A stretch of 64,000 nucleotides of DNA from Oikopleura dioica (Eukaryota > Animalia > Chordata), in the NCBI GenBank assembly GCA_907165135.1, contig OU015566.1, forward strand, positions 3,720,001 through 3,784,000, in the 5' to 3' direction. How positions within the stretch are numbered: the first letter of the stretch is position 1; every line of letters begins with the position of its first letter. Below the pieces are notes generated by a model. The model was given only the letters and a program-made list of their open reading frames with translations, made no database searches and was not told the origin of the DNA. A program made the translations under genes and the position numbers. Positions 8,051 to 51,782 of the stretch are shown here, piece by piece.

Positions 8051-9579
8051 ATGAGTTCTGACTTTTTCTACTTTAATATTAGACGCTTCTCCAATAAAGC
8101 GAAGTCCGAGGCCGATGATTTTTAATAATTGTTCCTTTTTAAGTCCTCGTTCTAAGTTATATGAGGCTACGCTAGGTAAAGCGAGCTATTCGAACATCCC
8201 TATCGTAGGCAGTTTTGATTTAATCCGATCAAAGTTGAATGTCCCGACAAAAATTGCACCTTCTTTTGTTGAAGTCCCGGAGGTTTCTTTGATATTTTGT
8301 AAGAGGGGAGATAATTGTTCGGTAAAGCAGTTTGCTGAGGGTCCAATAAATCGCTTGCCCTTTTCATTTATTGTCCTTATCTGACACCTGTTTGGCGTTC
8401 GCCACGTGACCGCGATTGTTGAATAAATGATAACAGTAAACCTTCGATTGCAGCCGATCCCCGGGTTGCACCTGCGCCTTCCGTACCATCAATTGTAACT
8501 GGTTATTTAGGAAATTCCGTCTCTTCCGGCAATTTACTAATGCGCTTAATTTTATAAACTCTAAATCTTCTATTTGAAAATAATCAGGAAGAATTTCTGA
8601 TGAAAGACAAAATGGTGGGCAAGGAAGTTTTCGGTCGAAGCGCGCGGATTTTTGGAAGAGTATTTTCTTTCTTTAAATAAGCACCGTTTCCAATAAAAAT
8701 TGTCAGACATTTGTAATTCTTGCTAAAAATATAGTCTCTTCTTGGCGCTTCTTCTTATTAACAAAAGCATTAATTCTAGCGGCGGGAGTTCGAAACTTTC
8801 TGGTAAAACAGCGGCGACTGCAACTTGCCGCTGCAAATCCTCGTAATCGCTTGGCAGTCGCAGTTACGTTTTTAAGAACTAGCAATAACGGGCATCCATT
8901 AATTATTTGCTTATTCGGAAGATATTAAGTTATTCTTTTGGGCTTTTTGAAATTCCGCGCTTATCGCTTTCTTGCATCAAAAGAAACAATTTTGTTGGGT
9001 TCTTTAAATACGCTCATTTCGGTTAAAAATGAAATTAAAATGATCCAATAGATTTTTAGTTTTCACGTGAGTTTGGGGTAACTTCGTCTAAAGGAGGGTA
9101 TTGTTAATAAAAAATTTTTTCCCAGACAGATTGTATTCCATTTACCTTATCAAAAGAGGCATTTATACTTTGAATGATGTTTCTTTTATATCTTTAATTT
9201 GTCTTTAGGACTACTTTATCCTTAGTTTGATTTTAAAAATTCAAAAATTCTGAGTGCGTTAAATTTTACGATACTTCTTCCTTATCATTCAAACAAATAA
9301 AAGGCTTTGGCCGCCCTATTTTACGTGTCAATTATCGAATCATGGTTTGATCATGTGAAGGTTCGCTGGCTGGGGGATGCGATTATTCTAGCGTTCCAAA
9401 AAATTCTGAAGCGCGCGCCGCTTTTGATCATTCCTCGTTCGTTTTCTTGGAACTTTTATTGTTTTAAATGCATTCATTTTTAATAACTTTCTGTAAAAAC
9501 TCGACGGGATGTTCGTTTTACCACAGATTACAAACGATTCTTATCAAATAAAAAGTTTCTTTCGCAACCCAAAAAAAAA

Positions 9580-16568: not shown

Positions 16569-17138
16569 TATCGAAAACCGATTTTCTTCTTTGTAATCAA
16601 GTCTTTATCTATTTTTTCACAATAATTTGTCCCTTTTTCTCACCCTCGGTATGAAGCTCTGTACCGCCATCTGCGCTGATCACGTGATCAATCCCAATCT
16701 TCAAGGACTTTCTTTGAAGGGCTGGTCAATCCTAATTAGTAAACACCCCAAAAGACTCCTTCCAAATCGATCTTTTGCTGCTGATTTGATTTTACTTTGT
16801 TAATTTTTGACTTTCGATTTTTAATTATGATTTGGCCGGCTATATCATCGACAGTTTCTTCGATTTGCCTTTGAATCGGCCCTTCTATCTCAATAGTCTT
16901 GTTGTCAAAGAAATTATTGACGCAAAATCAGGCAAGATATTGAATAAAATTGGGAGGTAAGGAAGGTCACTGACCTCTAAAATTATCAAAGAGAGCATTT
17001 TTTTAGAAAAAAAAAACGATAAATTTCACGAAAAAAATGGCGGCTTCTTATTCGCTGGTAGGCGAAATACGGGCTTCTGATTGGCTGATTTTTTCGAAGA
17101 TTATTTTTTAAGAAAGTGTTGTTTTTGTCTGTTATCAG

Positions 17139-25260: not shown

Positions 25261-26181
25261 ATCAATATTTTTATTGATATTTTTTATCTAATTTTCTTAT
25301 TTTCTTCGAATTTTATTTTCGCTTTTTTAAAAAATTTTATATAATAATATTTCTACCTTTCATCAAATCCAGAACAACAGCTAGAAAATAAACTCCTCGC
25401 CGTTTTTATCATCTTCTTTTTCTTCGTTTATTCAACTCTCTCCTTTTTTAATTCTTCAATTTCGTCTCTTATTCGCGGCGAAATGAATGAATGAAGTGTT
25501 TAAAATTGCAATAAGTTGGGATTATTAAACCTCTCGATAACGCTGAGAACGGAGCCGCTCGATTTTTTCGATTTCTTCTCTTTTTTTGCAGCGCTGCGAG
25601 TTGACGGCGCAGCGCGGAGGGCGCCAGAGTGAGAAACAGCGCATTTTTGACATTTTTATCAGGGAGGGATTTTATAACTGTAATTGACCTGTTATTGCAA
25701 TTTTCGATCATCGGAAAAATCAGGGCAAAAAAAATTTTTAGATTTTACAAATTTTAACGTCAAAAATTCGAAAAAGACATCAAAAATTACCAATTTTTAA
25801 GAGGTCTTTTCTTCCAAAATTACCATGATGATACCCTTATTTTCTTCCATATATCCTAAGCTCGAACCCTTATTTGAAGATTCTATAAGCAAAAAATAAA
25901 CAAAAAAATTCGGTAGAGTTTTATTAAGGGATCCCAAGGGACCTAATTATGAAACTTTACCAGCAGTTAGAAAAAAGGGTGCAGTTGTTTCATGGTAGCT
26001 GATCAAACTCGCCGCTACTTCCTTATGAGCTTCTCGCCATCTGTGACTACACTCTCGAGAGCACTCAGACTCGATTCAATCAGACCGCCTTTTTGTCACT
26101 TCCTTTTTTTTGGTCACGTGCTTCTCCTTCAGAAGTTTAAGGAAATTGAAGATATGACATCCTAAGCCTGGAAACATAAGA

Positions 26182-26393
26182 AGAAAGCCTAAGTCAGGGT
26201 CTAATAGAACTGAAATGAAAAGCCGCGCAGCGGCTTTCTGAAAAACGAAGCCACAAAGCGGCTTCGCTCATTTAGCCATTACATTCTATCGAAAATTCTG
26301 GCGAAGCCACTACGCGGCTTCGTTTTTGAAAAAGCCGCTGCGCGGCTTTTCATTTTAGTTCTTTCTGACCCTGTCTAAGGCTTTCTACACAGG
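26182..26393. mobile_element. MITE family X, copy 3
   Basis: AGAAAGCCTAAGTCAGGGTC ... GACCCTGTCTAAGGCTTTCTACACAGG; four symmetric AAGCC(G/A)C palindromes. Confidence 0.7.
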
Positions 26394-26950
26394 TTGTCCA
26401 GCCCTTTATCGTAAATTATACAGTAAAAAAGCCCTGTTTAGCCATTTCCGCTTCTGAGTTTATCCCCGGGTTTCCTGCCCCCCGAAACGCTTTCCTGTTT
26501 CATTTTCTTAATTGCGAGTAGATTTGGAACGCGGCCAAATCGCAGATGTTTCTGTCAATTTGGCGACACAATCGACAAATAAGCAACATGCAAAAAATTG
26601 ACATCTTTACGACCTTTTCATTCTAAATTTGCGCCGCTTCCTCTCTCACCGTCTGATTTTGCACGTGAGGGAGAATTTCAAAAACAATATTCTTTATTTC
26701 ATTAGAAAATTTATTTTTCCCTTTTTTGATAAAAAAGAATCGAAAATTTCCACTTGAAATTGAAAAGTGCTCTCGAAAAGAATTAAGGGGCTCCAATCAG
26801 GGACTTTTTGAAGCATACTCATGGTACTTGGCAAGAATTACAAGATTTGGTGAAAATCAACCTTTTTGAAGAAAAAAATGAAGTTCCAAATTGAGCAAAA
26901 GTAGAGCCCTTCCGATTTTCAAGGTTAGGGTTAGAGTGTTTATTGGCTTT

Positions 26951-27070
26951 TTGACGACATTTGGCAACATTCGGCGACATTCTTCGACATTCGGCGAAAT
27001 TTGGCGACATTTTGCGACATTCGGCGACATTTTGCGACATTTGGCAACATTCGGCGACATTTTGCGACAC
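26951..27070. repeat. 10-bp minisatellite x12 (consensus TTGGCGACAT)
   Basis: Twelve in-register decamers ending (G/C)ACAT; preceded by GGTTAGGGTTAG. Confidence 0.95.
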
Positions 27071-27314
27071 AAAAAATGTCGTCTATTTTCAAAAATATCT
27101 ACAAATTTCATATTTACAAAAGAAATCCTCTGAATAACCCTCGGAAATCCCTTCTTTTTCACAGAAATGCGCAATAAAAATCTGATAAGGATCGAACCAC
27201 CATCTGTTCAACCCTTTTTTTCTCACCCAATATCACGGTCAAAATCAAGCTCCTCCAATCACCGCGCTCTCATCCCTTCTATTTTCGTCACTCACCCGCG
27301 ACGATCGATTTATT

Positions 27315-27359
27315 GTATAGTAATCACGCATTAATAAATATGGTAACAGGAATATTCCC
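27315..27359 (-). repeat. Split direct repeat B2 (45 bp, 3' terminus of element)
   Basis: Identical to 27750-27794: GTATAGTAATCACGCATTAATAAATATGGTAACAGGAATATTCCC. Confidence 0.95.
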
Positions 27360-27487
27360 GAGCACGCGCAATTACAATACTATGGAAGACTCTGGCCGTT
27401 TTGAGTCTAGGTTATGGCTTGGGTAGTATGTAAGCGTGTGCTCGTTTACCTACATACTAACGCTTATTCTAGGGACGGAGGGCGGGT

Positions 27488-27794
27488 GTCTTTGAGAGTT
27501 GATTAAATTCTCGGCTTTGCGAGTTTGGAGGCTCTCAAAGATTCTCTTAACTTTTTCCCTGTGAATATTATAGCCCTAGGCTATAATTTTCGGTTCTGGC
27601 TTGCGTGATTCTATGCAGCCGCTTAAGTGTCTCGCTCTCTTGCGCCTGTATCACCTCCCGTTTTGGAAATGGGTCACGGCACTGTCGGTTCTTTAGTTGC
27701 TAATCCGAGTCCACCGATGCTTGAAGCTGCTAATCCGAATCCTATATTCGTATAGTAATCACGCATTAATAAATATGGTAACAGGAATATTCCC
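27488..27794 (-). repeat. Internal B1-A2 junction (A2 27488-27749, 262 bp; B1 27750-27794, 45 bp)
   Basis: A2 matches 42050-42311 and abuts B1 directly. Confidence 0.95.
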
Positions 27795-27844
27795 TCCCCT
27801 ACCATTTTTGTTATTCTCATCATTGCTAGGTCATTATGGCAATT

Positions 27845-29067
27845 TTATTTTGGAAATATTGGCAGTTTGAACGAAGGTTTTACCAGAGGCTTATTATTCC
27901 GTTTCGCTCTTCTGCTTCTTAGCTTCTTGAGCATCTTCCGGATCTTCGGAGTCTGATCCTGTCTTAGACTTATTTTAAATATATTTTCAGGCTTAATTCC
28001 TACCTGCTGTGTCTCAGGTTGTTCTTTGAGGCGCCTCTTAGCTGCTCGAGCCTCTGCAATTGATGCTGGGGCCCCGTTATCGGTGCATTCCAGCCAGCAT
28101 CGTTCGTAATAGTCTGGCATGACGCTTCCTGGTGCCCAGCGCATCGTGTGAGCCAGTGTGTTTTGGGCTTGGCCGGCCCTGCGGCCCTCCACGTAGAAGC
28201 TGACTCGGCCTGAGTGGGCTGATACCTAGATTTTGGCATAAAATATTTTTTTTTCGGTTAGCGTAGCTCTTACCTTTTTGTCGAGTCCTGCCTTTTCACT
28301 GTAGCGTCTCAGATAGTCGCCCGCGATGCTTGTTTTTCCTTCTAGAAGCGGAAACACTAAGCCTTAAGGTTTTTGATGCTTTGGGGTTTGCGTGGTGCTG
28401 TTGTACCTTTTGCTTTGTCACGTAGTTGGTGTCGAAGCTCTGTTGTGATGGGTGCTCCGTGTTCTATATCCATTGGAACGTTGAGCGTTTCCATTCGTTT
28501 GCAAAAAGGGTCTGTTTTGCTGCTTCTGATGTGGAAGCGCCAGTACTCCTTGCCATTTTCTTTGAGGATGCTTCTGTCCTCAATTCGGAGATTCAGAACT
28601 TCGCCCATTCGAGCCCCCGTGACGTAGGTGAAGAAGAAGGCCATCGCTGCTTCTCGAGGCTTGGGTTTTTTAGTTTCCATGAGCTCGTGCCAAAGCTTAA
28701 CTGCTTCCGATTCTTCCAGGACTTCTGCTTGCTGAAATTTGGGTTTTTTTTTTTGGTTTTTCCGTTCGCTTACCTTGGGGAATTGAAGCGATTCTTTGGC
28801 AGATTCTCTCGCTCTGTGTTCGCACCAGAGCTTTATTTGACGCTTTTCTTTCTGGCTAAGGGCCTTGTTTAGTTTTAGGGCCGCTACATCTTGGATGAGG
28901 GTTACCCCTTTGCCATAAGCGTAGGCTTTAAGCTGCGGTCTGACTAGAAGCCTGTCCAGGAAATGTTGGATGATATCTTCGTGGGAAGCTTCCTGGTAGT
29001 TGAAGCTTGCCAAAGCCTCGGCGATGTCCCAGAGTTCTTTGAGATTCTCGAGTTCCAGCCAGGTCAT
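27845..29067 (-). CDS. Tyrosine recombinase, 3 exons, 374 aa
   Basis: Exons 29067-28407, 28356-28274, 28225-27845; GT-AG introns of 50 and 48 nt. Spliced product has R (GARMGE), K (RSSKTD), HxxR (AHSGR), W (MRW) and Y (DYY). A further in-frame 45-nt intron near 28000 is possible. Confidence 0.93.
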
Positions 29068-29243
29068 TTCTGAAACTTCAGGGGTTAAGAAACTGCCACA
29101 ATTCTTAATATATTTTTTTTTTTAGGAATGGTGGGCTAATCCCTTTTACTGTTTAATTGAGGGGCAGTTTTTTTTTTAAAGGGTTTTTATAGAGTGGCTA
29201 TGGGGCAGTTTTATTTTGCGCTGGCTGTCTGAGGCTTGACGCT

Positions 29244-30485
29244 TTACTCGACGCCTCCTTGATCTTGAAATTTCTTGGGAGCGTCATTGTTGCTGCTGTT
29301 TCCTCCTCCGCGACCTCGTCCTCTGCCTCGTCCTCGGCCTCTGCCTCTGCCTCGGAAGCCTTTGTTTTTCTGGTCATCCGTATTATCAGTTTTTTGGCCG
29401 TTGTTGTGGTCTCCACGCGGCTTTTTGGCTGAGCCTGCATCTGAGAAACCGCCTCGGCGACCCCTTTTGCTGCCGGAGTCTTTTCCTGTGAGTCTCCAGT
29501 CTTCTGAGCCGTCCATCGCCGCTTGTAGCCATTTTTTGTGATGCGGTGTGGTCATGTTCATGTTTAGGGAGTGCTCGAAGTCCATTTGGGTGTTGGCGGT
29601 CATAAGGGCTGAGCATCGAAGGAGGGCTGTTCTCCGAGGCATGTCCGGGGTTTTGATCAGGAAATCCATGATGGCCGTTACCACTGGCTTTGCTCGCTTC
29701 TCAGGCCCCATAGCCGCTTTGTAGCGTCTTAGAAGCTCCATCAGCTCGTGCCCCTTGAACATTCGCTGCTTCTTCGCGTCTGTAATGAAGTGGCGGAATC
29801 GTCGGCCCATTTCGTCCAGGTTTTCACCTTCGCCTTGGTTAAGGTCAACCGCTCCGATCTGGGTCTAAAAGAATTCGTTTTTCTAGGATTCTCTTTTTGG
29901 TAGTTTTACCCTGTAGTAGGAAGTGATGCCTGTTGTTGGGCAGGTTTCCGAGTGAATTGCCGCTGTCTCGCCTTTCTTATGAGTCAGGTCGGAGATTTCC
30001 GCTTCCCGAATCTTGATCGCCTTGAGCATGGTGGACTTCGCTGCGTAGCGCTCCATTTTCTTGACGCTTAGTTTTTCGAGTGCCTCCGCTATTTCTTTAG
30101 GGTTGTTGGCATCGTAGAACTTGTTGTCCTCGGCAGATCGCTTTCTTGCATTTGGCTCTGCTTCCTTGATTTCGATGCTTTTTTGGCGATTTTCGGCGAG
30201 AGTCTTCATTTCGGCCTAAAAATCATCTTTTTGACGACTTAAGGTTAGTGGCTAGGATCTTACGATGAGTTCGTCCGTCATAGAATCGTGGAAGACGAGG
30301 TCGTTGCGTATGTCGTCGATTTCGAGTCTTAGCCGCTTTATCTCTTCCGAAGCTTCGGGGGATTCTTGGTCGGCTTCGTAGTCGGCCTGCGTGATGGCTA
30401 TCCGCGTAGCTCGTGTTCTTGAATCATGCTGCGTGGACGTAAAGTGCTCCTTCAACATTGACAACACATTATGATGGTCGCCCAT
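29244..30485 (-). CDS. Element ORF-E, 3 exons, 382 aa, coiled-coil with C-terminal (GR)n tail; putative nucleic-acid-binding/structural protein
   Basis: Exons 30485-30264, 30215-29910, 29864-29244; GT-AG introns of 48 and 45 nt, both phase 0 and frame-joining; GFRGRGRGRGRGRGRGRGG near the end. Confidence 0.85.
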
Positions 30486-30602
30486 ATTGGCAGGTTGATG
30501 CGGCAATCTGAAGAAAGGGTTCGAGTCAGCTGGGTTATAAAATTGGGGCTGCGATTTTGTGTGATGCAAGATAGAAAATATAGTTCTCAAAGAGCTGCTA
30601 AT

Positions 30603-33112
30603 TTAGAGTCTATTGCAGATAATTTTTATGGTGGATATATTCGATGCTATTTTCCAGTAACCAGCTTCTGTCTTTATTTTCGAAGGCGTGAGGATAGAGT
30701 CTGCTGGAATGTCGAAGATTCTTAGGCCTCTAAGCCTTGCTTCAGCGACAACCGGTGTTTCCGCCTCATAGATGGTGATAACAAGCGCCCATGGAGTTGG
30801 GATCTCCAGGAGTCTTTTGAAGAATTTGTATGCTATAACTTGTGGTGGGAAAGCATAAAGGACTCTTCCAATCAATTTATATATTGGGAAGCTTAAAAAG
30901 TCAGCGCCCAACGCGTGTGCGGATTCTCTGCGTGCAATGAAGTCTTCGCATCTCTTGTTAATTTCCTGAAAAGTTGGCCGCTTTATTTTTGAACTGGTGC
31001 TTTTGCTCGATGCTTACCGTTGCTGCCACGTCGACATCCAGCGTCTTTGAGAGATGAGATTGCAGATATGCGAAGCCGTTGTTCGTCAGCCGCTGTTCTC
31101 TCGAATCGATGATTCTGGAAGGCGCGTCTGCCAGCTGCTTTTTTGTGGAAACCCAGTCGACCTTCATATCAATATTGAATCTCTGGGCGACTTCCCAGAT
31201 TCTGACTAAGATGCTGTTCATTTCGAGGTCTTTGCTTCCCACCATGATGCCTTGTACGACCGAGTCGTTGTCGCAGAGGCAGAGGATTCGCTTGTTTTCT
31301 AGCTTCGGTCCGTACCATTCTACGACATAAAGGATAGCCATGGCCTCTTTTATGCAGATGTGGCTGTCTGCTATTTCTTCGTCCCATGCAAATTTTTCTT
31401 CCAAATTCCATTGTTCTATAACGATTGCTCCCGCGTGCATAGATGCATCTGTATAGATAATAATGCCTGATTCTTGACGGTTATGCTGCGTCCAGATTCT
31501 CGAAAGTCCATTCTCTTCAAGTTTCCTCCACTTGGCCCACTCGCTTCTGACCTGATCTGTAAGCTTCGTGAATTCTTGATCTTTGTGCATGGCCTGGGTT
31601 ATTAGGAGCGTCGTTTGGCGGATTAGAAGCCTCATGTTGGAGAAGACTTCTGCCATGCTTGCCATGGTGCCTCTGATTCTTTCTAGCAGCTTGGTTTCCA
31701 CTTGCTGCTTTTCTAGGGCTTCTTGCATGAGGTTTATCAGGGCGTTCCAGCGTTGAGGAGGTATTTCTACCGTTTCTTTGACTGTATCCAGAATGAAGCC
31801 TAGGAATTCGATTCTTTGCGTCGGTTTGAATGTGCTTTTCTCGATGTTCACATAGCCGCCAAGGGAGATCAGAGTAGCTGCTGTCGCCCAGACTTCTTTG
31901 CAGATTTTTGTACCGTCTAGAAGCTGTCTTCTTTCCTCGTCTGATGCTGGTGACACAATCAAGAGGCGATCATCGAGGTAGAGCGTGATTTTTACCCCAT
32001 TTTTTCTCAGAAAATTGACGCCACAGAGGTTCATGAGCTGGTAGATGCCTGGAGCGGCTGGTATTCCGAACGCCAAGATGTTATTCATGAATCTTTGGCC
32101 TCCCCATTCGAAGCAGGCCATTTTGCGGCTTTCTTCTGAGATCGGCAGCTGATGAAAACCTAAATTTTTCAGTTTTTTTTTTTGTGGCAAAAAATTTCTC
32201 GCCTTTTTTATCATCAAACTTGAACAGCAAGTCGCCTCTGTTGAGCATCTGAATCGCTGTGCCTACTGCATCTAATTTGCAGGGGAAGGTAAACAATTGA
32301 AGTGGTTTGAGGATTCCTCCGTTGAGGCAGACTCTTGTTTCCTTTCCGGGCTTGTCCACTAGAATGAAGCCTGATTGCAGCCAGCAGTTTTTCGATGCTT
32401 CTGGAAGCCTTGAGATTGAGCCCATCTTGCACCAGGTGAGGATTTGGTCGATGATTTCTTCGTTTCTAGACAGGACCGCTTCTTGGCTCGCTACGGTAAG
32501 ACTCTTGAATCTTTTCCCGATTTTCTCGTAGGGCTTTGGAACGAATTTTGTGATGCGCAGGCGGCCGTTTTTCCAAGTTTTGTGGTTGCCTCCGAGCTTC
32601 TTGAGGGTTTCTGAGTTTGCGTGATGTCGTTTCCAGCGCGTAACCAGCATCTTTTTCTTGAATTTTTCTGGCTGCTTGTGCGAGATTGGCTTGAGGTTAT
32701 AAAATAGATCGGCCCCGTTCATGACGAAGTGGTAGATGAGAGGCTTGATTTTTTCTGGCATCTGATGAATCAGGGTTCTCCAGTTGTCTTTATTGTGTGT
32801 CCAAATGCCGGCGATGAAGTCCGATTCTTTTTTGAAGAAGAGTGAGCTCCAGTCTGGCTTCTCGCGGCCTTCTAAGACTGCAACGACTCTTTCTAGCAGC
32901 TTTGATTCATAGATTTTCCATTCTTGCAGTGAGTTTGGGCCTTTAACGTGTGATTCTTTTAATGTGACAGGTGTGATGAGGCTAGTTTTCAATGGCTCGA
33001 ACGCGCCTTTATTAGCTAGAGCCGTCATTTGCGACTCGATGCTCGCCCAAGTCGTCGCCTTCTTCGGTTTCTTCTCTTTTTCGCTTTCCTCCTTGTCTCC
33101 AGGCGCCTGCAT
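30603..33112 (-). CDS. Pol: reverse transcriptase, RNase H and DIRS-type adenine-methyltransferase-like domain, 3 exons, 804 aa
   Basis: Exons 33112-32203, 32159-31018, 30965-30603. Motifs FDDKKG|FHQLPI, LAFGIPAAP, YLDD, IEFLG; RNase H YTDAS, IKEAMA, CDN, LADAPSR; MTase LDVDVAAT|EINKRC...LGADF...YAFPP. Introns: 43-nt GC-AG and 52-nt GT-AG. Confidence 0.95.
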
Positions 33113-34483
33113 GGTCGTAGTTTTTAGGAATAGGGATTCGCCAAAACAGCTTTTCGTAAGTCGTGCCGCTCAGTGACGCTGGATTCTCTAAGCCTCTTTC
33201 GATTCTGTCGTCGATTCCACTTAGATTGAGGATCTTGTATTCGGCCTCCGGGATGTTTTGGCGGTTTGGCCAGATTCTTCGTAATGATAAGATTGCGTCC
33301 CAGGCTGTAAACTCCGGGTTACAATCCACATTTGCCAAGAAATCCTTAAGAATGATGCTGATTGGGTTAGCTTCACCCAGTAGGGAGTTCAAATGCGTCC
33401 AGGCCGATCTTGCCGCGCTTGAAAGGAGTCTCGGGAAGATGCAGCGGGTATTCGTGATTTGGAAAAGGATTTCTCCAAAGATTGCGTTCGCAATGGCTGC
33501 AGCCATCTGTCTTTCGTTTGAGAAGGAGGCACTTCTTTCCTCCACCCTTCTGTTCAGGACTTGTTTGAATCTTAGGTTCCAGATGTGGGAGTAGATAATG
33601 AATCTGACTGACGCTTTAGAGTTCGAGGCTGCTAGTTTCTCGCATTTGGCCACGGCCATTTTCAGGATAGCTTCTGCTGGGTGGCCCCAGAGCCTTCCTA
33701 TTATCCAGAAGATGGCTTCTTCTAGCTTCTGAAGATCTTCTCCGCTTATTGAGTCTTGTTCAGTAGGCGCCATCGTAGTTGCCCAAAACACCAGCTCTTT
33801 GGACCGGAAGATTTCCGAATTGTGGACTTGCTTCATCAGATTCTCCACTAGCGGTCTTACTTTCCCTTCGATTGTGTTCTGAATCGCTTCTACTTCTATT
33901 TTATTAGTAGATGCTATGCGTCTGTTGATGTTGATTGACGTGCTGTGGAGCAGTGTTGCAATAGCTTGGAAAGCCTCTGTGGATTCGGCTGCTTCTGTTT
34001 CCTCTTCTTCCATTTGTCTGAGGATTTTTTTTACCGCGTTTGGAGCTTCTTGGGATTCTGAGAATATTTTCAGCGCTTCTTTGACGAGGTTCGTCATTTT
34101 TGCCTCTACCGTTTCTCCATAGCAAGCGACTCTTTTAGGAGGCACCGCTGCGTTCGTGTTGAGGCTATTTTGGATATCCCAGATTAGGGCTTTTAAAATT
34201 TCCAATTGAAGAGTTGTTCTTGCTTCATGAGCGGTTGGAAGGGTGGCTGGTATTTCGGGGACTTCCTCTGCTGCTTCCTCATCCGATTCTGCTGAGATGC
34301 TCTCCGAGAGGGATTCCTCTTTTTAAGGATAAGAAGCTTTGCACCATAAATTTAGATTCTATGTGAAAATGTGGACTTACTTCCAGGTTAAAGCTTCGAC
34401 TCTAAGTGATTAATTCAAAAAATAGAATCAGTCCTGATCTCAATGACCTCTTTTTTTTTTTGGCTACTGAAGCTTCCGTGCAT
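33012..34483 (-). CDS. Element ORF-C, 3 exons, 453 aa, probable Gag-position protein overlapping pol
   Basis: Exons 34483-34448, 34401-34381, 34316-33012 (GT-AG introns of 46 and 64 nt) give one frame; 3' end overlaps the pol start by 101 nt in another frame. Gag identity inferred from position only; the two small 5' exons are less certain. Confidence 0.75.
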
Positions 34484-34862
34484 CAAAAGCTAATCCAAAA
34501 CTTTATATCTATCCTTCTCCTGAGGCTGAAGGCATCTGTGAATCTTTTGGGGGGACTTCGCATGATCCAGACTCGAGTTTCATTTGCCCTTCTAAACTTT
34601 TGTCTTTGAGTCTCTTTTTTTTTGACTCTTGTATTCTTAAAAGGTATTTCTTTTTGAGACTTAGTGCTACATTTCTTTTGCCAGTAAAGAGTCGAATGTC
34701 TTCTATTGAGACTTGCTTATTTATTTTAGCACAGTTGGCTATTTGCCTAAGTAAAAGTTTTTTCCGTTAAAAAATTTGAAGATACAGATGATTAATAAGA
34801 GGCTTTTCCTATGATGAACAACTTTTCGTTGTTTTTGAATCTTCTTGCTTCTTTTGGCAGCA

Positions 34863-37205
34863 TCAGTAGGTCGGGGCAGCTTCGATGTTGATGGCAGGGA
34901 TGCTGATTTTGAGGTCGTTGAGGCATCGGACGAACATTTGTCTGATGAATTTGACGAGTTTGCCGCCGACTATCTTCATTGTGAAGCAGATGAGGATGTC
35001 CAGACGCTTTGGGTTGATGAAGCCGGCTTCTAAAGGCAGATTTGTTAATTTATGTTTTCATTGGTTCTAACTTACGGTAAGCTTCTTGGAATCTTTTCTT
35101 GATGCCACGGTAATCCATCCATTCGAAGATGTAGTGCATGACGCGGATTTCCTTGCTTCGGATGAGGCTGGATGCTTTGAAGGGCGGCTCGTCCTTGATT
35201 GTCCAACCACTGCGGCTGTGGTACTTTGCGAGTGATCGGCCCTCCTGCTGCGAGCTGATGAGCTTCTCGTGGCTGAGGCTGCTGTACCAGGCTTCTTTGA
35301 TCGCTTCTCGTTCAGCGTAGGAGAGACCATTTTCTTTCGGGGCGCCCAGGGCTTCTCTGACGCTATCCTTGCTCATGAGCTTGGCTTTTTTAAAAGGTCA
35401 CTTTTTGGTTTCTATTTTTAAAAGGTTTTTTTTTTTAGATTATTTTTATTTCTGCTTCAAAGTGACCCTTTCCTTGGCTTTTGGTCAGGAAGTAGTGATT
35501 CCCGGGTCGGCCCGTGTCTGCCACGTCGTAGATGCTGATGCGAGGCTTGAGGAGCGGCTTCTCTTCCTTCTGGGCTTCTTTTAGCTGCTTTTCGCGTTCT
35601 TCTTTCTCCTTCTGCTGGAAGTACTGCTGGCGGATCCTGGTGTTTTCTTCCACTTGACGCTGAGCCGCAGCTTTGGCCTCTTTCTTTCGTTGTTGTCGAG
35701 CCAGTTCTTCTTGCTCCTTCTGCTGCTGTTCTTGGCGCTTTCGAGCTTCTTCCTCCTTCTTTCGCTCTTCCAACTTCCGCTGGCGCTCAAGCTCCTGCTG
35801 CTTTTGTCTTTCTTCCTCTTCTTGACGTTCCATCTCCATCTGGCGCTCACGTTCCTGCTGCTTTCGCTGCTTTTCTCGCTCCTCTGTCTGTGAGGAGGCT
35901 TCCGCTTGTTGGAGAAGCTCTTCGGTGAGGCCACTTCGGCGGCTGAGCTGGTGTCTTCGTCTTCGCTCCATCATCTTGGCTCTGAAGCTTGTTGTAGTTG
36001 GCTGCTTTGGCGGATCTGCGGCTGCGGGTTCGCTGAAGCCTTCTAGCTGTGGCTCTTCCGCTGCTGAGAAGAATTCTTCCTCGAGGATTTCTTCTTTTTC
36101 TTCGTCATCGCCGCTGGCTCGTCTGAGTTTGCTTGGGTCGATCTTGACGGGCGGGTTGAACTGGCCTGGGTCTTTATAGAGGATTTTAAAGCCGTTTTAA
36201 TTCTAGAGAAACTTCACTTTTCGTTTTTATTTGGCTATAAGAATCCTTTCCTGACTGCGCGTTGAAAGAATCTTCATCGTCGCTGTCGTTTTCTGCGCTG
36301 TCCGTGGCTGCGACGACGTCGACGGCTGCGCTGGCTTCACTTTCAGGCTGCTGAGGCTCAGGTTCAGGCGCTTCCGGCGGTTCTTCCAGCTGCTGAGACT
36401 CTTTTTTCAAGGATTATAATGTTTGCTTTAAGACTATTTGAGGCTTAGCGATTCTGCTGACTTTTTAAATCCTTTCCTTGTTCTGTTTGGACTTCCTGAT
36501 GCTTGAGCTCTGCTGCTGGAGGGTCCAAAGTCTGAGTTGAAGCATCTTCTGGAAGCTCGAGGAAGAACTTCAGTGCGTAGGAAGCTGCTTTCGTTTCTTC
36601 CCAGCCTTTCTCTCGGATCATCTTCGCCTTGACTTCGCTCCTCATGTCCCTTCGCTCATCCTTTGAAGGGACTCTGTCTTTCTTGAATCTGAAGCCAGTC
36701 TTTGCCTTGAGATCGGCGATTCGTTCCCAGTAGACTGGCTCGGCCGCTTCGTCGAAGTTCTCGCCTTCTTCCAGGTATGCGAGGCAGACGATCCAAGGGA
36801 TGTCGATGTGCGCTTTGGTGACGTTCAGGCAGGAGTAGAAGAGGCTGGGGACTGAGAGATGCTTGTGTTCTTCTTCCAAGTCTCCGTACTCGTCCCGGAC
36901 GAGTTTTGAGAGGATTTTGGATGCTTTCTCCATCGCTTCCATATGCTTCTTGAGAGTGAGCTTCATGTCCTTGTCCATGAGGCCTTTTAAATGAGTTTAA
37001 AAGTGATCTTATGATCTTCATTTCAGATTATTAAGGGTTTCTTTTTAAACTCTTTTCCTTTGATCAAGGTTTCAGTAACCTCTAGAAACTTCTGGGCCAC
37101 TTTCGCTCGGTGCCTCTGGAAGATGGCATTGCCTTTCTCTTTCTTTTTCTCTTGCTTGAGGATGGGCTTGGGCATCTGCTGCTTGTTGCTGCTTTTGCTG
37201 CTCAT
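34863..37205 (-). CDS. Element ORF-B, 6 exons, 659 aa, unknown function, long E/R/K/Q coiled-coil
   Basis: Exons 37205-37058, 36983-36477, 36400-36251, 36171-35473, 35384-35076, 35029-34863; four GA-AG introns (74, 76, 79, 88 nt) and one GT-AG (46 nt), all phase 1; total 1980 nt with no internal stop. Confidence 0.8.
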
Positions 37206-37812
37206 AATTCCGTGTCTAGAAAGAAATTTCGATTAATTTTTTTTTTTGAAAATTTTGAATTTTTGTTGGCACGGAAAGAAAAAATTTGAGTACGAGCGGC
37301 AAATTTTAAGTTTTATCAAATAAAATTTTGTTTTGAGCAGCTAAAGCGGGAAAAATTCTCTCGGAAGCTTCTTTTTTTTTTTGATTCTCTTTTTTGGGGC
37401 GAGCGATTCTCTTTATTTTGTTTCAATTCTCAGAATTTCCAATGATCTGAGTTCGCGGCGCGCCCGCTCCTGATTGGCTGGCGCTCGCTCGCCGCGGGAA
37501 TTTTCCCACGCTCGTTTTTTCTGCTTTGGAATGGGTTTTTCCTTTCTTTTTATAAAGGATGCTTAATTGTATTTTGATTCACTGGCTATGAACCCTTTTC
37601 CTGGGATTTTTGCTGCTTATTTGGTTTCTGGTGTGAGGCTTTATGGATTTAAAATTTTTCTGGGCGATTTCTCTTTTAAGGGGACAATTTAACTGGCTGG
37701 AGTTCGGTTCGAGCCGATTAGATTCTCTAAGCTTCTGTCGCTTTTCTATTGTCTCCCTTCTCCTGAAGAGTGTGAAAATTAGAAGTGGGGTCAGGGTTTC
37801 TCTGGACAGGCG

Positions 37813-40800
37813 CTAATGTTGCTTGGCTTCCGTCTGACGTAGGACTCTAGCGATTCTTTCTTCAAGCTTCTGTAGCGCTGGCGTCCAGACATTCGGGAAG
37901 AAATTTTCTGCCTCAGCTGCTGGAGCTTCTTCCTTGGATAAAAAGTGGCTTGCCGCTTTTACTGCGTCCATCAGAATGTCGCGAATGTGGGTTGTGAATG
38001 GCCCGGCGATGCTGATGTCATGCTTTTCTGCCGCTATTTCTTCCCAAGATGCATTCGCGGATCTGAGAATTTGTTTAAGCTTCTTTTTTCTAGATTCTGT
38101 TAGAGCCGGATTCTACATATTTTCAGCTTATCATTTTGGGGCTCTTCTTTAGTAAAATAAATGTAAAAAATTACATATTTTTTACCCAAGGTTTCTAAAA
38201 AAATTTTAATTTATCTGAGGCTGAATTTGTAAGAAATTACTAATTTCTTACCGAGGGCGTATCGAGTCTTTATTTTTGAGGCCCCTTTTTTTTTGTTAAC
38301 AAGATGTAAAAAATTACTTATTTTTTACCGAGGGCTTTTCAATCTAATTACTTGAGTAAGTAAATTGTAAAGTTTTACTTTTTTCTTACCACAAGCTTCT
38401 GGAGCTTCTTTTTGAGGCTCTTTTTTTTTGACCTGTATAAAATATACTTATTTTTCCTGGAGGCTTTATTTTTTATTTACCTGAGGCTGATTTTGGTGGA
38501 AATTTCCATCGGCCAGGGGCGCGAGGCTTCGCCATTGCAGGTTTTGAACATTTCTCCTGCAACTTTGGGGTGTGCCCAGCAAGGCGTCTGAATCGAGTCA
38601 TATTCGCCATCGCAGCCGAGTGTGTAGATGTTCCATACGATGGTAAAGGCAGGGTTGAGCTCGGCGAATTTTTAGGCGTGACAATTCGCAGATTGTAAAT
38701 CGCGTGAAACGATAGCTGCTGTTTGAAGCTTTTTGCATCTTCGTTGCTTGGGAAAACGATGGTCAGGTAGCTTCGTTTTGACGCTTCTGTTGCGATCAGA
38801 GCCGCTACTTCATTCCAGTCGCCTTTTTTGACGTCTGAAATTTGGATTGCGAGGGTGGAGAGCGGCTCAAGTGCGGAATTGGCCCCTTTGCCAATCGGAA
38901 AAGCAGAGAAGCTGTTTCTGGCGTATTGGAGCGCGTCGTGGTAGATGATTAGGCCTTTAAGAAAGGGATCTTCGGCTCTGTTTCTTTTCTTGACGGCCGA
39001 GTCTAGCGAATTGAATCTTGTCACGAAGTCGAGGAGATTATCCCATCCGCTGCTGAGTAGGATTTCCGTCGCTTTCCAGGCTTCAATGATTGAATCGAAG
39101 CCCTCCACCTCCGTTTCTTGGATCTTTTTGATGAGGTTTTTGGTGGCCGCTGCGTTCGAGTCGTTTTTGAAGATCTGCGCAAGCTCCTGATGTAAGCTGT
39201 GCCATTCGGGGCTGTCGATTCTGATGCTTCTTTCTTTGAGCGCGTCGGCCAGGGCTGGCGGGAATCTTTCTTCGTGATTCTTGACGCAGTCGCGTCTCCT
39301 GCGCTCCAGGACTTCTAGCTTCATGCCCTTATTTTGGCACCATGCTGCACGGTCTTCTTCAAGTGGCGATTCGCAGCCTCGATCTTCTCGTGCTTCGGGC
39401 GATTCTTTCAGGCTGAGCCTTGCTTCTTCTGTGACTCTGAGTCTGTGGTAAAGCCAGCCCAGTGTGAACTTTTCGATGCTTGGATCCGGGCTGAATTTGC
39501 CTCCTTTTGCCCATTTCCAACCTGTGGTAAGAATTTTGAGATTGTGGATGACATCTCTGGCGTCTGGGAGCCTCTTTGTTTCATTCACCACTTTCACCAT
39601 CGTGTCTAGCAGTTTTAGCTGAGTTGAAGATGGCCGTTTGAGTCCTACGACGCACCTATCGTTTCTCCAGAAGTTCTTGTCGTTGTTGAAGCTTTCGATT
39701 CCTTCTTTGCAGCTACTTGTCGTCCAATCCGTGAGAGCTAGCTTCTTCAGCGCCGCTGCCTCAGTTGTGTTGAGCATCGGATGATCTGCTAGGGCTAGAA
39801 GCGCTTTTTCCTGTCTGCTGCTTGGGGCGGGATCTAGGTTGAAAATCCATAGCTGTGGAGCTGCCCTGCACGGGATCCACAATACCCAGTGGTATTCGCC
39901 TCTTCCTATTTCTTTGATTCGGAGAGTAGTGCCGATGGGGCAGGTCTTTTTAGCCGCTGCACCGAGCCACTTTTCCAACGACTCTGATTCCGTGAGTTGC
40001 TTCCATTCTGAGTGCCACTGGGTGATCATTTCTCTGCAATCACCGTCTTGTCCAATGATGCTATCGTTGAGAAGCTGTTTGTGAGCCACGTGCAGGATGA
40101 GCTGCGAGAGAATTCGCGTAAGCGGTGTGGCTCTTGGAAGTTTTCCGTCTTTTTTCTGGAAACTTCCGATGACTTCCGGAATCCAGGCATCCGCATTCGC
40201 TGGTTCTCGTCTGGTCCAGCTGGTTTCTGGCTTCTTTTTGAGGGAGATCCAGGCGTTTTCTTGGTGGCATATTGTGTGCCAGTTTTTGGACGCTTTCAGC
40301 CATTGCAGCTTTTCGAGCATTTCTGCTGGGCTTGGATGCGCTTCGATTCTGAAAAGTGCTTCGAAGACTTCTTCAAGCCCTTTGGTTATAAGCTTCGTTA
40401 ACCATGAGCGGCTGCGGAAACCTTGAAGCTCGTAGTCTGCTCTGGCCTTGGTCATGTTTTCTTTGATCACGCGGATACAGATTGCGTGCCAGAAACCTTC
40501 GTCGAGGATGTCCGCGTGGTCCAGCATCTCCCACTCATTGAACCAATCTTCTGAGCGCAGCTTGTTTCGACGCTTGAATTCCTCCAGGACTGAGGTTGGA
40601 AAGAGGCGATTAGCTTCGTCTGGATCCGCCGGTGTTAGGAATCTGAGGTCGTTGCCCGAATCATCTTCAGTTGGGAGTCTTTTGGCTACGATTCTCAGGG
40701 CGTTTCCTCTTCTGCCCTCTGGTCTTGCGTTGGCGTCAAAATCTGCTATAGATTCGAAGCTTCTCAAGTCGAGGCTCGGGCTAAAGCTGCACCCCTCATT

Positions 40801-41388
40801 CGTTGAGAGTTTCGTCGGACTGATAGCTGGGCTAAATGGGTATGGCGCTAATTCTAGCTGCCAATCTTCTGCGGCTTTTCCTTCGGCTGCTGCTATTTTT
40901 GAAGAAATCGCTTGGAGCGTCTCCGTTGGGCAGCTTGATTCTGGTGTGAGCCAAAGTGATTCTTTGCCCGATGTTGAGCAGAATATGATCTTGGCCTATG
41001 ACGCTAGCTCTTCGAATTGACGCTTCGTCTTTTCGGGCGTTTTGGGATTGAAAGCCAGATTCTGGTCGGCCAAGAGGCTGTGGACGTCTGAGAGAACTGC
41101 GAGTCTGATGATTTTCGAATCAGGTCCTTCTGGGAGAAGGATTGTTCTTGAGATTCGTGACCAATCGATCATTGCGTCTAGGACTAGATCATTTCTAATG
41201 GGCTCATCAGTCATTCTCTTTTTGACTCTAAAAGGATTCAAAGCGGAGCCTTTCCTGAGGATAGCTGCTTCTAGTGTTTGAAGCTTCCTGGGCGTGTGCT
41301 TGATTGGCAGTTTTGGGTGTGCATCTGAGGCTGTGCCCACTTTCGGCGCGTAATTTTGGGCTGCTTTCCCGAATGCCTCGCCGAACAT
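37813..41388 (-). CDS. Element ORF-A, ~1060 aa if the single in-frame TAG is bypassed; unknown function
   Basis: One frame runs from ATG 41388 to 38481 with a lone TAG at 40998-40996; donor CAG|GTAAAT at 38480 joins in phase 1 to terminal exon 38096-37813. Confidence 0.7.
38163..38457. repeat. Array of five 23-bp palindromic units (GTAA(A/G)AAAT-N5-ATTT(T/C)TTAC) spaced 61-77 bp
   Basis: Units start at 38163, 38229, 38306, 38367, 38435; first three near-perfect, last two degenerate. Confidence 0.75.
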
Positions 41389-42049
41389 AGCTGAATAAAG
41401 CTTGATTGAGCAAGGATTCTTAATTTTGTATAGAAATATCCTCAAGGTACAGGAATGCGGTGGGTTGCAGTCTCAGAAATTCTAAAACGCGCAGCTGCCG
41501 ATTCGTTCTTGATCGGTCTTTTAACCAGGGTTTCTCTGCCCCGGGGCTAGCAGCTCCGAATCGTTCTAGTTCGGAATCTTCTTAGCTTCTCTAAGGTGTG
41601 AAAATGATGCTTATGCTGCTATCTTCTCCTTTCCGGGAGCTTCAGGCTTTTTTTTTTAGATCTCGTTCTAGGATCTGCCTGGAATGGGGGATTTTTGGTG
41701 CATCGCGCGCGCTCGCTCTGATTGGCTACGGCTTACCGCGCCTTTATATGAACTTGCGCCGCTTATGCAGGTGCCGCTTTTTCCTTTGAGTGAAGCGGGA
41801 GGCCGTTACTAGAGTGTTGGCCTCATCCCAGAATCTTTTAAGGTCCGTAGACTCGAAATTTAAGCATCTTTTCTTCCGCAATTCTTGTAGAATAAGCGTA
41901 TAAGTCCAGGGGACTTTTAGTTTTTATAGTCCCTTGGACTGAGTTTAGAGTCTTTGAGACTTTTAAGGGTGGGCAAGGTGCCCAAACAGTTTATAGTCTT
42001 GAAGGACTTGGGAATAACTGGTAAAACCTAATGATGGTCTACCTTAAGA

Positions 42050-42311
42050 GTCTTTGAGAGTTGATTAAATTCTCGGCTTTGCGAGTTTGGAGGCTCTCAA
42101 AGATTCTCTTAACTTTTTCCCTGTGAATATTATAGCCCTAGGCTATAATTTTCGGTTCTGGCTTGCGTGATTCTATGCAGCCGCTTAAGTGTCTCGCTCT
42201 CTTGCGCCTGTATCACCTCCCGTTTTGGAAATGGGTCACGGCACTGTCGGTTCTTTAGTTGCTAATCCGAGTCCACCGATGCTTGAAGCTGCTAATCCGA
42301 ATCCTATATTC
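42050..42311 (-). repeat. Split direct repeat A1 (262 bp, 5' terminus of element)
   Basis: Matches 27488-27749; contains hairpin ATTATAGCC-CTA-GGCTATAAT and 9-bp inverted repeat CTTTGAGAG/CTCTCAAAG. Confidence 0.95.
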
Positions 42312-44145: not shown

Positions 44146-44680
44146 TGATTCTTCGGCAAGACCGAAGAATTGATGCTTTAAATAACACTGATTCTTCGGC
44201 TAATTGAGAATTGCCTTGAACCGAAGGATTTATGATAAACTTGACAGTGATTCTTCGGCAAATTTTCTAGAATCCATTATCGAAATTCTTTTGATAGATC
44301 TTTGATTGTCAAATATGAGTCATAATAAAAAGGACATTTTCTAGAGAAAAAACTCATTTTAGCAATAAGTATTTTCTATAATTTGAGGCTAGTGTTAGGG
44401 GGCACTGAGCAAAGTGACAGAACAAACTCACCCGAGGGGGATAGGCTAGGGTTAGTTAGGGTTACTGAAGGTAACCCTAAGTAACCCTAGACTAGACCCC
44501 GGCATTTTAGGACCTAAGGGGCGGAGCCCCTTGGTAAGGGGCACAGGAATCTGTGAATAAATTCACCTTAGCCGAAGAATCAGTGCATCTTCTATCACTT
44601 ATTCTTCGATTCTTGCCGAAGAATCACTGTTCTTTCACGAATCAATCCTTCGGCCTCCAAGCCGAAGAATTAGGCCGTAT
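44146..44680. mobile_element. Degenerate foldback element with subterminal GATTCTTCGGC repeats
   Basis: Three GATTCTTCGGC on the left mirrored by three GCCGAAGAAT on the right; centre has TAGGGTTA/TAACCCTA inverted motifs. Confidence 0.5.
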
Positions 44681-49833: not shown

Positions 49834-51782
49834 GAACTTTCGCATCAGTAATTCTAACGAATCCTACTTTTGGCGATTTTCCTGCAGCTTCAAATTTCAA
49901 ATTCGCTCAACTCCAAATTCAAACCAACTCCAACTCCGATTCTTTTAATTCGAATTCGCACGTGACCGTTGCTCCAAAACTGCGCAGTTTGGACCAGCTC
50001 CTCATTGTTTCCGGTTTCGACATTCCGCAAATCATCATTCCCCCCTCGAAAGAGAACATCATCATCACGAATACAGTCGTCCAACCAGTAATCCAGTCAG
50101 AAGCAAAAATGTATATCGATGACAGTGCAGCTCCTCCACCATCTTTTTTGAATAATTTCGGCGACATTGGAACTACCGCAGCGACATTTCTAGACCTCGA
50201 AAATGAAGCTGGAACGCCTCCATCATTTTTGCCAGGCTTTGAAGATTTATCCACAACACCACGTAAGATTTCAACCACTGAAATTGTACCTCATCCTTGT
50301 TCTAGAGCAAGACCTTCTGCTGCAAGAAGACTTCGTTCACGCAAAACCCGGACTCTCAACTGGCGGTAGATTCCTCGAATTCGCCGTGAATCCAGAGCAA
50401 ATGATCCCCGATTGGGTAAAAAGCGATGTTCTGAAGAGAGAAAATCTTCCGAATGACACGATCAATCCACTCCACAACCTAGAAATGGCAAATCCACAGT
50501 GCAATCCATTCCCGTTTTGTGACGAAAATGGATGCGAGCAGTGGCAATTGATGACGTTAATAGTTTTTCAATTGTTATTATTGATGCTTATTGTGATCAG
50601 TAATGTAACGATTATTTCCGTCATTTTTGATATGAACAAATCGTCAAGAAATAGAAGGAAAGGGGTTGATTTAGTTGAAATTTTTCTTAAGAAAATTTCT
50701 TCATTTTCGTTTTTTCTAGCTTTTTTTGCAAAAAATGATTCCTTTTCAAAGTTATCGTTCCGCAAACATCTTCAAACTTTCCCTCGCCCTCGCGGATTTA
50801 CTACTCGGGTTGAGTATACTCCCGCCTTCATTGAAAAACACCATCAATCTTCTCATCAACGAAGATTTCCACGAAAAAATGGCGCAAGAACAAATCAATT
50901 CTTTCGGCTCCCCAATCGCGATCATCTTCGGCGCTGGAGCCGTCATAGCCACGATTGCCTCGATCTGGTCGATTTTTGCGGTGCAATTGGACTTGTTTCT
51001 TCGAATGCGCTGGCCGGTTAAGCAGCACGTGGGCGGGATTCTCAATACCAACCGGGCGAGATGGCTGACCGGACTCATCTGGGTCTTCGCGATTGGCGTG
51101 ACTTTTTCCCTCCTCGGATTTGGCATCAACTTTGGTCTCAGTCGATCGACCCTGTCTTACGGCCCTATTGCGGATGAATACAGTGAAGAAAACGATCAGT
51201 CAACGAAATTCATCATCTTCACCGTTTTGGTCTGGGGCCTTCCGTTTCTGCTGACCCTTCCGCTGGGCGTCTATTTGGTCGTTTTGATCAGAAATGCAAG
51301 CAAGAAACTCGCGCTGAGAGCAAATCAAAGCTATGTTCGAAGACATCCAGATGTCCAGGATAAGAAAAAGAGCTTGAAGAAGAGTTGGGAGGCGACTTTG
51401 AGGACGATCACTGTTGAGGTAAGATTTTGACGATGATTTCTTGTTTCTGACCGTTTTTTAGGTCATTTTCTTCATCACTTTCGTCCCATCCATCGTCGCC
51501 CGTATCCTGTACGCGTACACCGACGGTTGCGACCCAATCATCAACACTCTTTCCTTCATCGCCACTTGCATCCTCTGCATTGGCTCCTTCGCCAACCTCT
51601 TCGTCTACCATCTCATGTGGAAAGACTTCCAGGAGCGACTCACAGCTCTCGTCTGCATGGTCAAGAAAACCGATGCCAGCCCGATCAGCTCGATCAAAAG
51701 TCCAAAAACGACGAGGACGGAAGCCAGCTTATCGGTCAAAATAAACATGTCGTACGACATCAAACGCGAACTTCCAATCTAA
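49834..51782 (+). CDS. Class A (rhodopsin-like) GPCR with long Ser/Thr/Pro-rich ectodomain; start unresolved
   Basis: TM1 ...LIVISNVTII; TM2 FKLSLALADLLLG; TM3 end QLDLFLRMRWP; TM4 W; TM5 WGLPF; TM6 FFITFVP; TM7 SFANLFVY. Confidence 0.88.

Follow-up and report, generated by a model that had tools for sequence, protein, structure and literature searches.

An enlarged, six-gene and intron-bearing tyrosine-recombinase retrotransposon family in Oikopleura dioica

Retrotransposons that use a tyrosine recombinase (YR) are the least understood class of retroelements and are usually small units of three genes. A locus of Oikopleura dioica, whose genome is to our knowledge the most compact of any animal, raises the question of how large such an element can become, and of whether additional genes found between its ends are its own. 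The DNA analysed here, called the window, is a stretch of 64,000 nucleotides covering positions 3,720,001-3,784,000 of chr1 (OU015566.1) in the OKI2018_I69 assembly. The element occupies window positions 27315-42311 (14,997 bp; about 3,747,315-3,762,311 on the chromosome) and all its long open reading frames (ORFs) lie on the minus strand, as do all features of the element given below. An earlier reading of this DNA from its letters, referred to as the original prediction, had proposed a YR retroelement of about 15 kb with six genes, introns and split direct repeats of the PAT/Ngaro type. Our analysis supports this description. We assign a probability of about 0.88 to the reading that the element is one copy of an Oikopleura-specific lineage of the DIRS order, with PAT-type termini and a DIRS-type Pol, about 15 kb long and with six conserved genes instead of the usual three.

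The ends of the element were defined with a repeat finder. On the element strand, A1 is followed by about 14.2 kb of genes, then by B1 and, without a gap, A2, and finally by a spacer of 128 nt and B2 (element coordinates, el, are given by el x = window 42312 - x). The 5′ split direct repeat A1 (262 nt, 42050..42311) is 100% identical to A2 (262 nt, 27488..27749). Likewise, B1 (45 nt, 27750..27794) is 100% identical to B2 (45 nt, 27315..27359), the 3′ terminal repeat with which the element ends. Both identities had been predicted. Since an exact match of 262 nt lies within 64 kb, the A repeat cannot be attributed to chance. A1 begins with GAATATAGG, a start sequence kept in four related loci described below (L001, L002, L005 and L008). 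Of these loci, L008 has the very same B sequence and the other three one that is about 85% conserved; the last 22 nt of the spacer (27360..27487) are conserved between subfamilies. B1 and A2 together constitute an internal copy of the circle junction (...ACTATAC|GAATATAGG...). The repeat finder detected no second set of terminal repeats inside the element, nor any inverted repeats at its ends, which together with an internal complementary region characterize DIRS1-like elements. The composition of the element (41-51% GC, with a strongly negative strand-specific AT skew) differs from that of most of the flanks (about 35-41% GC).

None of the seven insertions examined is bordered by a target-site duplication. 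In all subfamilies A starts with GAA(T/A), and the host 3′ flank after B2 reads GAA in three of the seven insertions, TAA in two, AAT in one and TTT in one. These trinucleotides fit loosely with a crossover within a trinucleotide common to the circle junction and the target, a proposal made for DIRS elements and summarised in PMC7192593; the fit is suggestive only and not conclusive. We also considered a palindromic recombinase site at the B|A junction (CTATA-CGAA-TATAG in the window copy) and rejected it, as it is not conserved in other subfamilies.

The enzymatic core is encoded by two genes. The first, pol (30603..33112; 804 amino acids (aa) after splicing, in a model free of stops), specifies a reverse transcriptase (RT), an RNase H and a DIRS-type methyltransferase (MT)-like domain. 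Pfam recognised RVT_1 (E 1.2e-8) and RT_RNaseH within 30958-32217, and in an alignment with nine relatives the YLDD motif of the RT and the D-E-D-D columns of the RNase H are invariant. The MT-like domain comprises about 130 residues after the RNase H, with motifs DVDVAAT...N...FIAR...LYAFPP that include conserved D..A(T)..N and YxFPP columns. We accept it as the DIRS-type domain because its profile matches the Dam-scoring region of P0019, a DIRS-type Pol (hhalign probability 95%, E 3.8e-8). The second gene (27894..29067; 332 aa after splicing) encodes the YR. Its Pfam match is weak (Phage_integrase, 28357-29067), and the assignment is made from the catalytic residues R...K...HxxR...W...Y, read from the sequence as the Arg in GARMGE, the Lys in SSKTD, HSGR, a Trp 23 residues past the HSGR Arg and a Tyr 9 residues past that Trp, a spacing which we take to be the same as that of Cre. 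The spliced YR model is free of stops and its 332 aa equal the length of the annotated gene. The combination of RT, RNase H and MT with a full YR catalytic set, as first proposed, is thus recovered in detail. Pfam searches revealed no protease, integrase or envelope-like family in any ORF, and no product carries a transmembrane-type hydrophobic segment.

How these features place the element can be read from the structural scheme of PMC4157794, in which an MT domain marks the DIRS group, split direct repeats mark PAT and inverted repeats DIRS1-like elements, while Ngaro elements are without MT. Because it combines an MT-like domain with split direct repeats, the element keys out as PAT-like, a placement made by structure and not by a tree; the position of its internal repeats, downstream of YR, is that of the echinoderm form. 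It has the RT and RNase H of the DIRS order, a YR replacing the DDE integrase, no protease and no target-site duplication. The MT-like domain sets it apart from Ngaro, and the Gag zinc finger of the Pat1 subgroup is missing. LTR (long terminal repeat) elements, including the Tor elements (Ty3-gypsy), differ in every respect considered: the split repeats are not complete LTRs, and integrase, protease and a 4-6-bp duplication are lacking. Outside Oikopleura, the nearest relatives are metagenome proteins.

Is the whole unit a single mobile element? Translated pieces of the window match every related locus in the same order and for all six genes, at seven or more loci. In the Okinawan genome these are L001/L010 (chr1, 3.35 Mb; 14.5 kb, A of 267 nt, 100% identical), L002 (chr1, 4.06 Mb; 14.7 kb, A of about 270 nt, 98%), L008 (PAR, 10.1 Mb; 14,988 bp, A of 265 nt, 100%) and L011 (PAR, 13.15 Mb; 14.5 kb), a second full-length copy of the L001 subfamily. 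In the Norwegian genome, L005 (FN653022) spans 15.2 kb with A repeats of 240 nt (99%). The A1...B1A2..B2 layout is present in L001, L002, L005, L008 and L011. The Norwegian loci L004, L006 and L007 are collinear too; not all their ends were captured, and for L004, whose 3′ end falls outside the fetched locus, the terminal repeats were not covered. Amino-acid identity between these relatives and the window ranges from 24 to 58% for ORF1, 38 to 66% for ORF3, 59 to 78% for the RT and 40 to 84% for the YR exons.

The comparison of L010 (chr1) with L011 (PAR) is the most direct. The two are 99.2-99.4% identical over 14.5 kb, with A and B pairs 100% identical in each, and their similarity runs from the first base of A1 to the last base of B2, beyond which the flanks are unrelated. 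Because the similarity is bounded by A1 and B2, the 15-kb unit, extra genes included, transposes as one. A composite had to be envisaged here, in which an ordinary YR retrotransposon of 5-7 kb would have acquired some 8 kb of foreign DNA, either a nested insertion or a block of host genes, or in which the assembly had joined unrelated pieces. The size of the element, two to three times the usual one, the lack of known domains in ORF1, ORF2 and ORF5, and the Nanopore-based assembly of the window's genome (PMC8008620) would all fit with it. However, seven or more loci carry all six genes in the same order between such repeats, at 24-78% amino-acid identity and in Nanopore (Okinawa) as well as Sanger (Norway) assemblies. 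Two copies, each on a chromosome of its own, share 99.3% identity that begins at A1 and stops precisely at B2, purifying selection acts on the extra genes (see below), and the element contains no second terminal-repeat set. We therefore regard a composite as extremely unlikely. The test set in advance by the original prediction, namely whether the repeats and the additional ORFs occur together at other insertion sites, was run, and the repeats and all extra ORFs co-occur at L001/L010, L002, L008, L011 and L004-L007.

Selection was estimated by the Nei-Gojobori method, and pN is far below pS for all six genes. Between L001 and L002 the ratio of nonsynonymous to synonymous divergence (dN/dS) is 0.15 for ORF1, 0.23 for ORF2, 0.09 for ORF3, 0.04 for Pol, 0.10 for ORF5 and 0.04 for YR, all rough values, with synonymous sites saturated and aligned blocks picked by protein similarity. 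Between copies in general, it is about 0.15-0.23 (ORF1), 0.23-0.34 (ORF2), 0.09-0.18 (ORF3), 0.04-0.16 (pol), 0.10-0.20 (ORF5) and 0.04-0.11 (YR). As judged from these comparisons of copies, purifying selection on all six genes is shown, its direction being clear despite the roughness of the values. The extra genes are collinear across loci, are under purifying selection and moved with the element, and for these reasons they are the element's own conserved genes, not captured host cargo. Of the earlier proposal of about 8 kb of extra coding cargo, the additional coding DNA is thus present but its description as cargo is to be given up. Recent movement, also proposed, holds for the family, which on the evidence of its near-identical copies was recently active in O. 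dioica. The repeats of the window copy are indeed identical, but such identity dates an insertion less well than that of LTRs does, because in the DIRS model the ends are rebuilt from the internal junction.

What, then, do the four genes outside the enzymatic core encode? None of ORF1, ORF2, ORF3 and ORF5 has a Pfam family above threshold. ORF1 (37813..41388) is an orphan, about 1050 aa long in intact relatives, and is collinear with intact ORFs in L001, L002, L010 and L011, where it is uninterrupted over 971-1016 codons. A profile made from three aligned copies was searched against 1.84 billion representative proteins and only 18 matched. Those that could be traced are O. dioica proteins, all but one on the fetched elements, and metagenome proteins; the remainder are untraced fragments. 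One of the metagenome proteins, P0027 (764 aa, on a 5.1-kb contig of JGI metagenome 3300072015), aligns with ORF1 along about 690 residues at 23% identity and shows, by homology, that the ORF1 family reaches a much more distant marine organism. Profile searches with ORF1 gave no match in Pfam or PDB. Its AlphaFold (AF2) model, built on a 9-sequence alignment, has a mean pLDDT of 53 and no Foldseek match in PDB, the only structure database searched for it. In the Okinawan copies, ORF1 is unannotated apart from one 126-aa C-terminal fragment.

ORF2 (34863..37205; about 620-660 aa) has a central region rich in Glu, Lys, Arg and Gln, homologous blocks in all copies and a stop that coincides with the end of an annotated gene; it too is without a Pfam family. 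ORF3 is an open stretch of 436 aa (33012..34322) directly upstream of pol, which it overlaps by 101 nt. The annotated coding sequence (33012-34097, 361 aa) starts 75 codons downstream of the conserved position. Copies of ORF3 are 41-75% identical, its AF2 model is all-alpha (pLDDT 68 overall, 77-92 in the core), and a CCHC-type zinc knuckle is absent from the gag-position ORF of every copy. In five of nine members of the family, about 35 residues match Pfam DUF851 weakly and below threshold (best E 5e-4). Because of its position, ORF3 probably plays the role of Gag. ORF5 (29244..30485), located between pol and YR and conserved in all copies, gives a stop-free spliced model of 382 aa, the same length as the L001 gene. 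It ends in a C-terminal Arg-Gly (RGG-type) repeat, and because of this tail it probably binds RNA. The original sizes for these four ORFs are close for ORF2, ORF3 and ORF5, but ORF1 is not an intact ORF of about 1060 aa in the window. Public gene models at the window locus fuse the out-of-frame tail of ORF1 with ORF2 (38551-34863, 708 aa) and pol with ORF5 (32761-29244, 945 aa).

The frames of several genes are broken by short interruptions. Ab-initio spliced gene finding, by dynamic programming with permissive non-canonical donors, chained the whole element into one gene and was discarded; introns were kept only when anchored by homology. Eight are well supported and perhaps five more exist. 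The best example is an RT intron of 43 nt (32160-32202, GC-AG) that splits KKG|FHQLP. In six copies from two genomes, ...KFDDKKG / FHQLP is interrupted at the same codon position and phase by 40-60 nt whose sequence is unrelated between copies. It starts with GT in five of the six and with GC in the window, and always ends with AG; at least three of the six interruptions contain a stop or throw the sequence out of frame. In the MT-like domain, a 52-nt GT-AG intron follows DVDVAAT (30966-31017), at a position common to four copies. ORF5 contains two GT-AG introns (30216-30263 and 29865-29909), YR two or three supported by homology (28357-28406, 28226-28273 and probably 27927-28003), and ORF2 a GT-AG intron at a conserved position (35030-35075) among several candidates. 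The homology-anchored introns of ORF5, YR and ORF2 measure 45-52 nt, and the host median is about 49 nt (PMC8008620).

Frame changes in a retroelement might alternatively reflect programmed frameshifting or readthrough of overlapping ORFs, or simple decay. The element offers some ground for this, with ORF3 and pol overlapping by 101 nt in different frames, pol and ORF5 in the same frame with one stop between them, and a genuine frameshift in a run of A in ORF1. None of these would account for FDDKKG / FHQLP being broken at one phase in six copies by unrelated stretches of 40-60 nt with GT/GC...AG ends, for the same pattern at the MT, ORF5 and YR sites, or for lengths that agree with the median host intron (about 49 nt, PMC8008620). 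An explanation without introns is accordingly very unlikely. The single stop between pol and ORF5 (30603-30605, el 11707-11709) is seen in the window and in L001, not in L002, and a Pol-ORF5 fusion by readthrough or splicing is possible in some subfamilies.

The introns bear on how the element moves. Because they interrupt the frames, Pol, ORF5 and YR can be translated only from spliced RNA, and because they have persisted while subfamilies diverged, reverse transcription must start from unspliced RNA. By analogy with retroviruses, the element would then rely on partial splicing. Following the model established for DIRS-1 (PMC7192593), a near full-length unspliced RNA extending from A1 to B2 would be reverse-transcribed, the internal B1A2 junction would template the joining of the ends into a circle, and the YR would carry out a crossover between the B|A junction and the target, leaving no duplication. 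Processing of the operon type by the host may help to express the six genes.

Introns at conserved positions in RT, MT, ORF5 and YR would be trivially explained if the element moved mainly as DNA, the YR excising the whole unit as a circle that is reinserted in a Crypton-like manner, with the RT accessory or vestigial. The integrated element does hold both half-sites and a full internal junction, and leaves no target-site duplication. Such a role for the RT is hard to reconcile with the constraint on RT, RNase H and MT, which are the most constrained parts of the element (dN/dS 0.04-0.16), on a par with the YR. Moreover, the feature represented here by the internal B1A2 junction is required by DIRS-1 for restoring its ends from cDNA (PMC7192593), and retroviruses and other retroelements retain introns by packaging unspliced RNA. 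Because RT, RNase H and MT are so strongly constrained, we consider it unlikely that DNA-only movement is the main route, and retain copying through unspliced RNA as the preferred mechanism.

In the window copy, pol, ORF5 and YR are intact. Three lesions affect ORF1: an in-frame stop at 40996-40998, where relatives have a sense codon, a change of frame in a run of A within 38652-38668, and, at 38090-38480, an insertion of 391 nt. An intron hiding the stop and the frameshift was considered and rejected, for the sequence removed would be homologous coding sequence in relatives. The insertion begins with GT, ends with AG and holds three 58-nt hairpin-bearing repeats, and could be removed by splicing. 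Each of these 58-nt units (38142-38403) contains a short hairpin (GTAAAAAAT..ATTTTTTAC), and their mini-intron-like appearance on the coding strand (GTAAAA...AAAG) suggests tandem duplication of an intron-like module. The lesions of ORF1 and ORF3 were probably inherited from the source copy, because the A and B pairs show zero differences in 307 nt; alternatively, the ORF1 frameshift may be a sequencing error in a homopolymer. The window copy is either non-autonomous for ORF1 function or already decaying.

Several observations weigh against the reading of the element as one copy of a six-gene DIRS-order lineage. The window copy itself has an ORF1 broken by these three lesions and lacks the conserved ORF3 start codon. 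The MT-like domain was not scored directly by the Pfam Dam model at threshold, and for ORF3 Foldseek returned no capsid-like fold (no significant match in PDB or BFVD). The gene model of ORF2 is uncertain, and the public annotation joins some genes differently from the models proposed here. The dN/dS values are rough for the reasons given above, and every step of the replication cycle is proposed by analogy.

How far does the element depart from known systems? It shares with PAT-like elements (Pat1 of Panagrellus, the echinoderm form SpPat1, Toc3) the A1...B1A2..B2 repeats with the internal ones downstream of YR, a gag-position ORF, RT-RNaseH-MT followed by a YR in direct orientation, the MT-like domain and the lack of target-site duplication (PMC4157794, PMC3266345). 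Whereas PAT-like elements measure about 4-6 kb and have three genes, the Oikopleura element measures about 15 kb and has six, with an extra gene between pol and YR, two large genes upstream of gag and conserved spliceosomal introns. The gag-position protein of the Oikopleura element also has no zinc knuckle, and PAT elements lacking one are reported only outside Metazoa (PMC4157794).

With DIRS-1 of Dictyostelium and DIRS1-like elements, the likeness lies in RT-RNaseH-MT and YR, in the low copy number and in the internal copy of the circle junction, which is experimentally essential for DIRS-1, whose cDNA intermediates have been isolated (PMC7192593). DIRS1-like elements, however, have inverted terminal repeats with an internal complementary region and overlapping gag, YR and pol ORFs, while the repeats of the Oikopleura element are direct and split, with no inverted terminal repeats. 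They are also smaller: DIRS-1 measures 4.8 kb (PMC7192593) and the Xenopus elements 4.1-6.2 kb (PMC9210276). The Oikopleura element is about three times as large as is usual for its class. As far as the account of Volff et al. 2004 given in PMC3266345 and PMC5240408 goes, DIRS1-like elements have been reported in O. dioica. A later survey recovered two O. dioica families from RT, MT and YR fragments and filed them as DIRS1-like by similarity (PMC3266345).

Ngaro elements have an A1...B1A2..B2 layout identical in kind, and some carry a fourth ORF encoding an SGNH hydrolase (PMC9210276). Unlike them, the Oikopleura element has an MT-like domain, and none of its extra ORFs is a hydrolase according to Pfam. 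Retroelements enlarged by added ORFs (PMC6431247) or keeping introns (Arkhipova et al. 2003, cited in PMC6431247) are also known among Terminons and Penelope-like elements. The enzymology of the Oikopleura element is unlike that of Penelope-like elements (Penelope RT and GIY-YIG) and of LTR elements (integrase). Tor elements of Oikopleura have added a third gene, expressed through special transcription (PMC4402516), while the element described here has no envelope-like protein or transmembrane segment. The 2019 review of giant eukaryotic transposons (PMC6431247) does not mention DIRS or Ngaro elements, and in the searchable literature, which does not cover Repbase and Dfam, no 15-kb six-gene form, extra ORFs or introns are described for these elements. 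We describe the element as belonging to a greatly enlarged, intron-bearing family of PAT-type YR retrotransposons with three orphan genes (ORF1, ORF2 and ORF5).

Other observations concern the distribution of the family. On chr1 (OU015566.1), L001/L010, the window copy and L002 lie at 3.35, 3.75 and 4.06 Mb, so that three subfamilies, with about 65-75% nucleotide identity to one another, are found within 0.7 Mb. By analogy with DIRS-1, this cluster may mark a preferred region, possibly pericentromeric. Further copies are on the PAR, and related genes on XSR, YSR and chrUn_4. At L003 (FN653076.1), a 453-nt direct repeat, 100% identical, is found at 7785-8237 and 16381-16833, 8,596 nt apart. Between the two copies of this repeat lie only ORF1, ORF2 and the beginning of ORF3. 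The locus, which has 2,334 N, is either a derivative of the family that arose by deletion or an error of the Sanger assembly.

The window holds no further copy of the element, and Rfam and tRNA scans of it were empty. On the B2 side, a 10-nt unit (TTCGGCGACA-like) is repeated about 14 times in tandem at 26940-27079, 235 nt from the B2 end, and an inverted repeat with 95-nt arms, 83% complementary, around a 33-nt loop lies at 26173-26395. On the other side, 44159-44656 contains a cluster of 41-45-nt inverted and direct repeats with a common CCGAAGAAT...ATTCTTCGG. The repeats at 26173-26395 and 44159-44656 look like small foldback elements of the MITE (miniature inverted-repeat transposable element) type flanking the insertion. 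The only flanking ORF tested that has a Pfam family is an exon of a rhodopsin-family G-protein-coupled receptor at 50726-51430 on the plus strand (7tm_1, E 1.8e-9).

A more far-reaching interpretation can be offered tentatively, at somewhat less than even odds: the lineage would have become, independently, a 'complex retroelement'. Its coding capacity would have been tripled by ORF1, ORF2 and ORF5, found nowhere else, and six genes would be expressed from one unspliced RNA through regulated splicing, perhaps with the help of host operon processing or trans-splicing. The introns might then be adaptive, in disguising the element as host genes, and new factors of replication or host interaction might be found in ORF1 and ORF2.

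In the public annotation, the genes of the family are entered as ordinary hypothetical genes of the host, some of them fused; masking and curation of the family are therefore advisable. For the YR class, a form of about 15 kb whose six genes are kept across lineages diverged down to 24% identity in ORF1 indicates that these elements can grow as LTR and Penelope elements do, and here growth occurs in a genome on which the pressure for small size is extreme. The conserved introns of RT, MT and YR provide a handle on how a retroelement separates the RNA that is copied from the RNA that is translated, and the three orphan proteins are candidates for new functions in replication or in interaction with the host.

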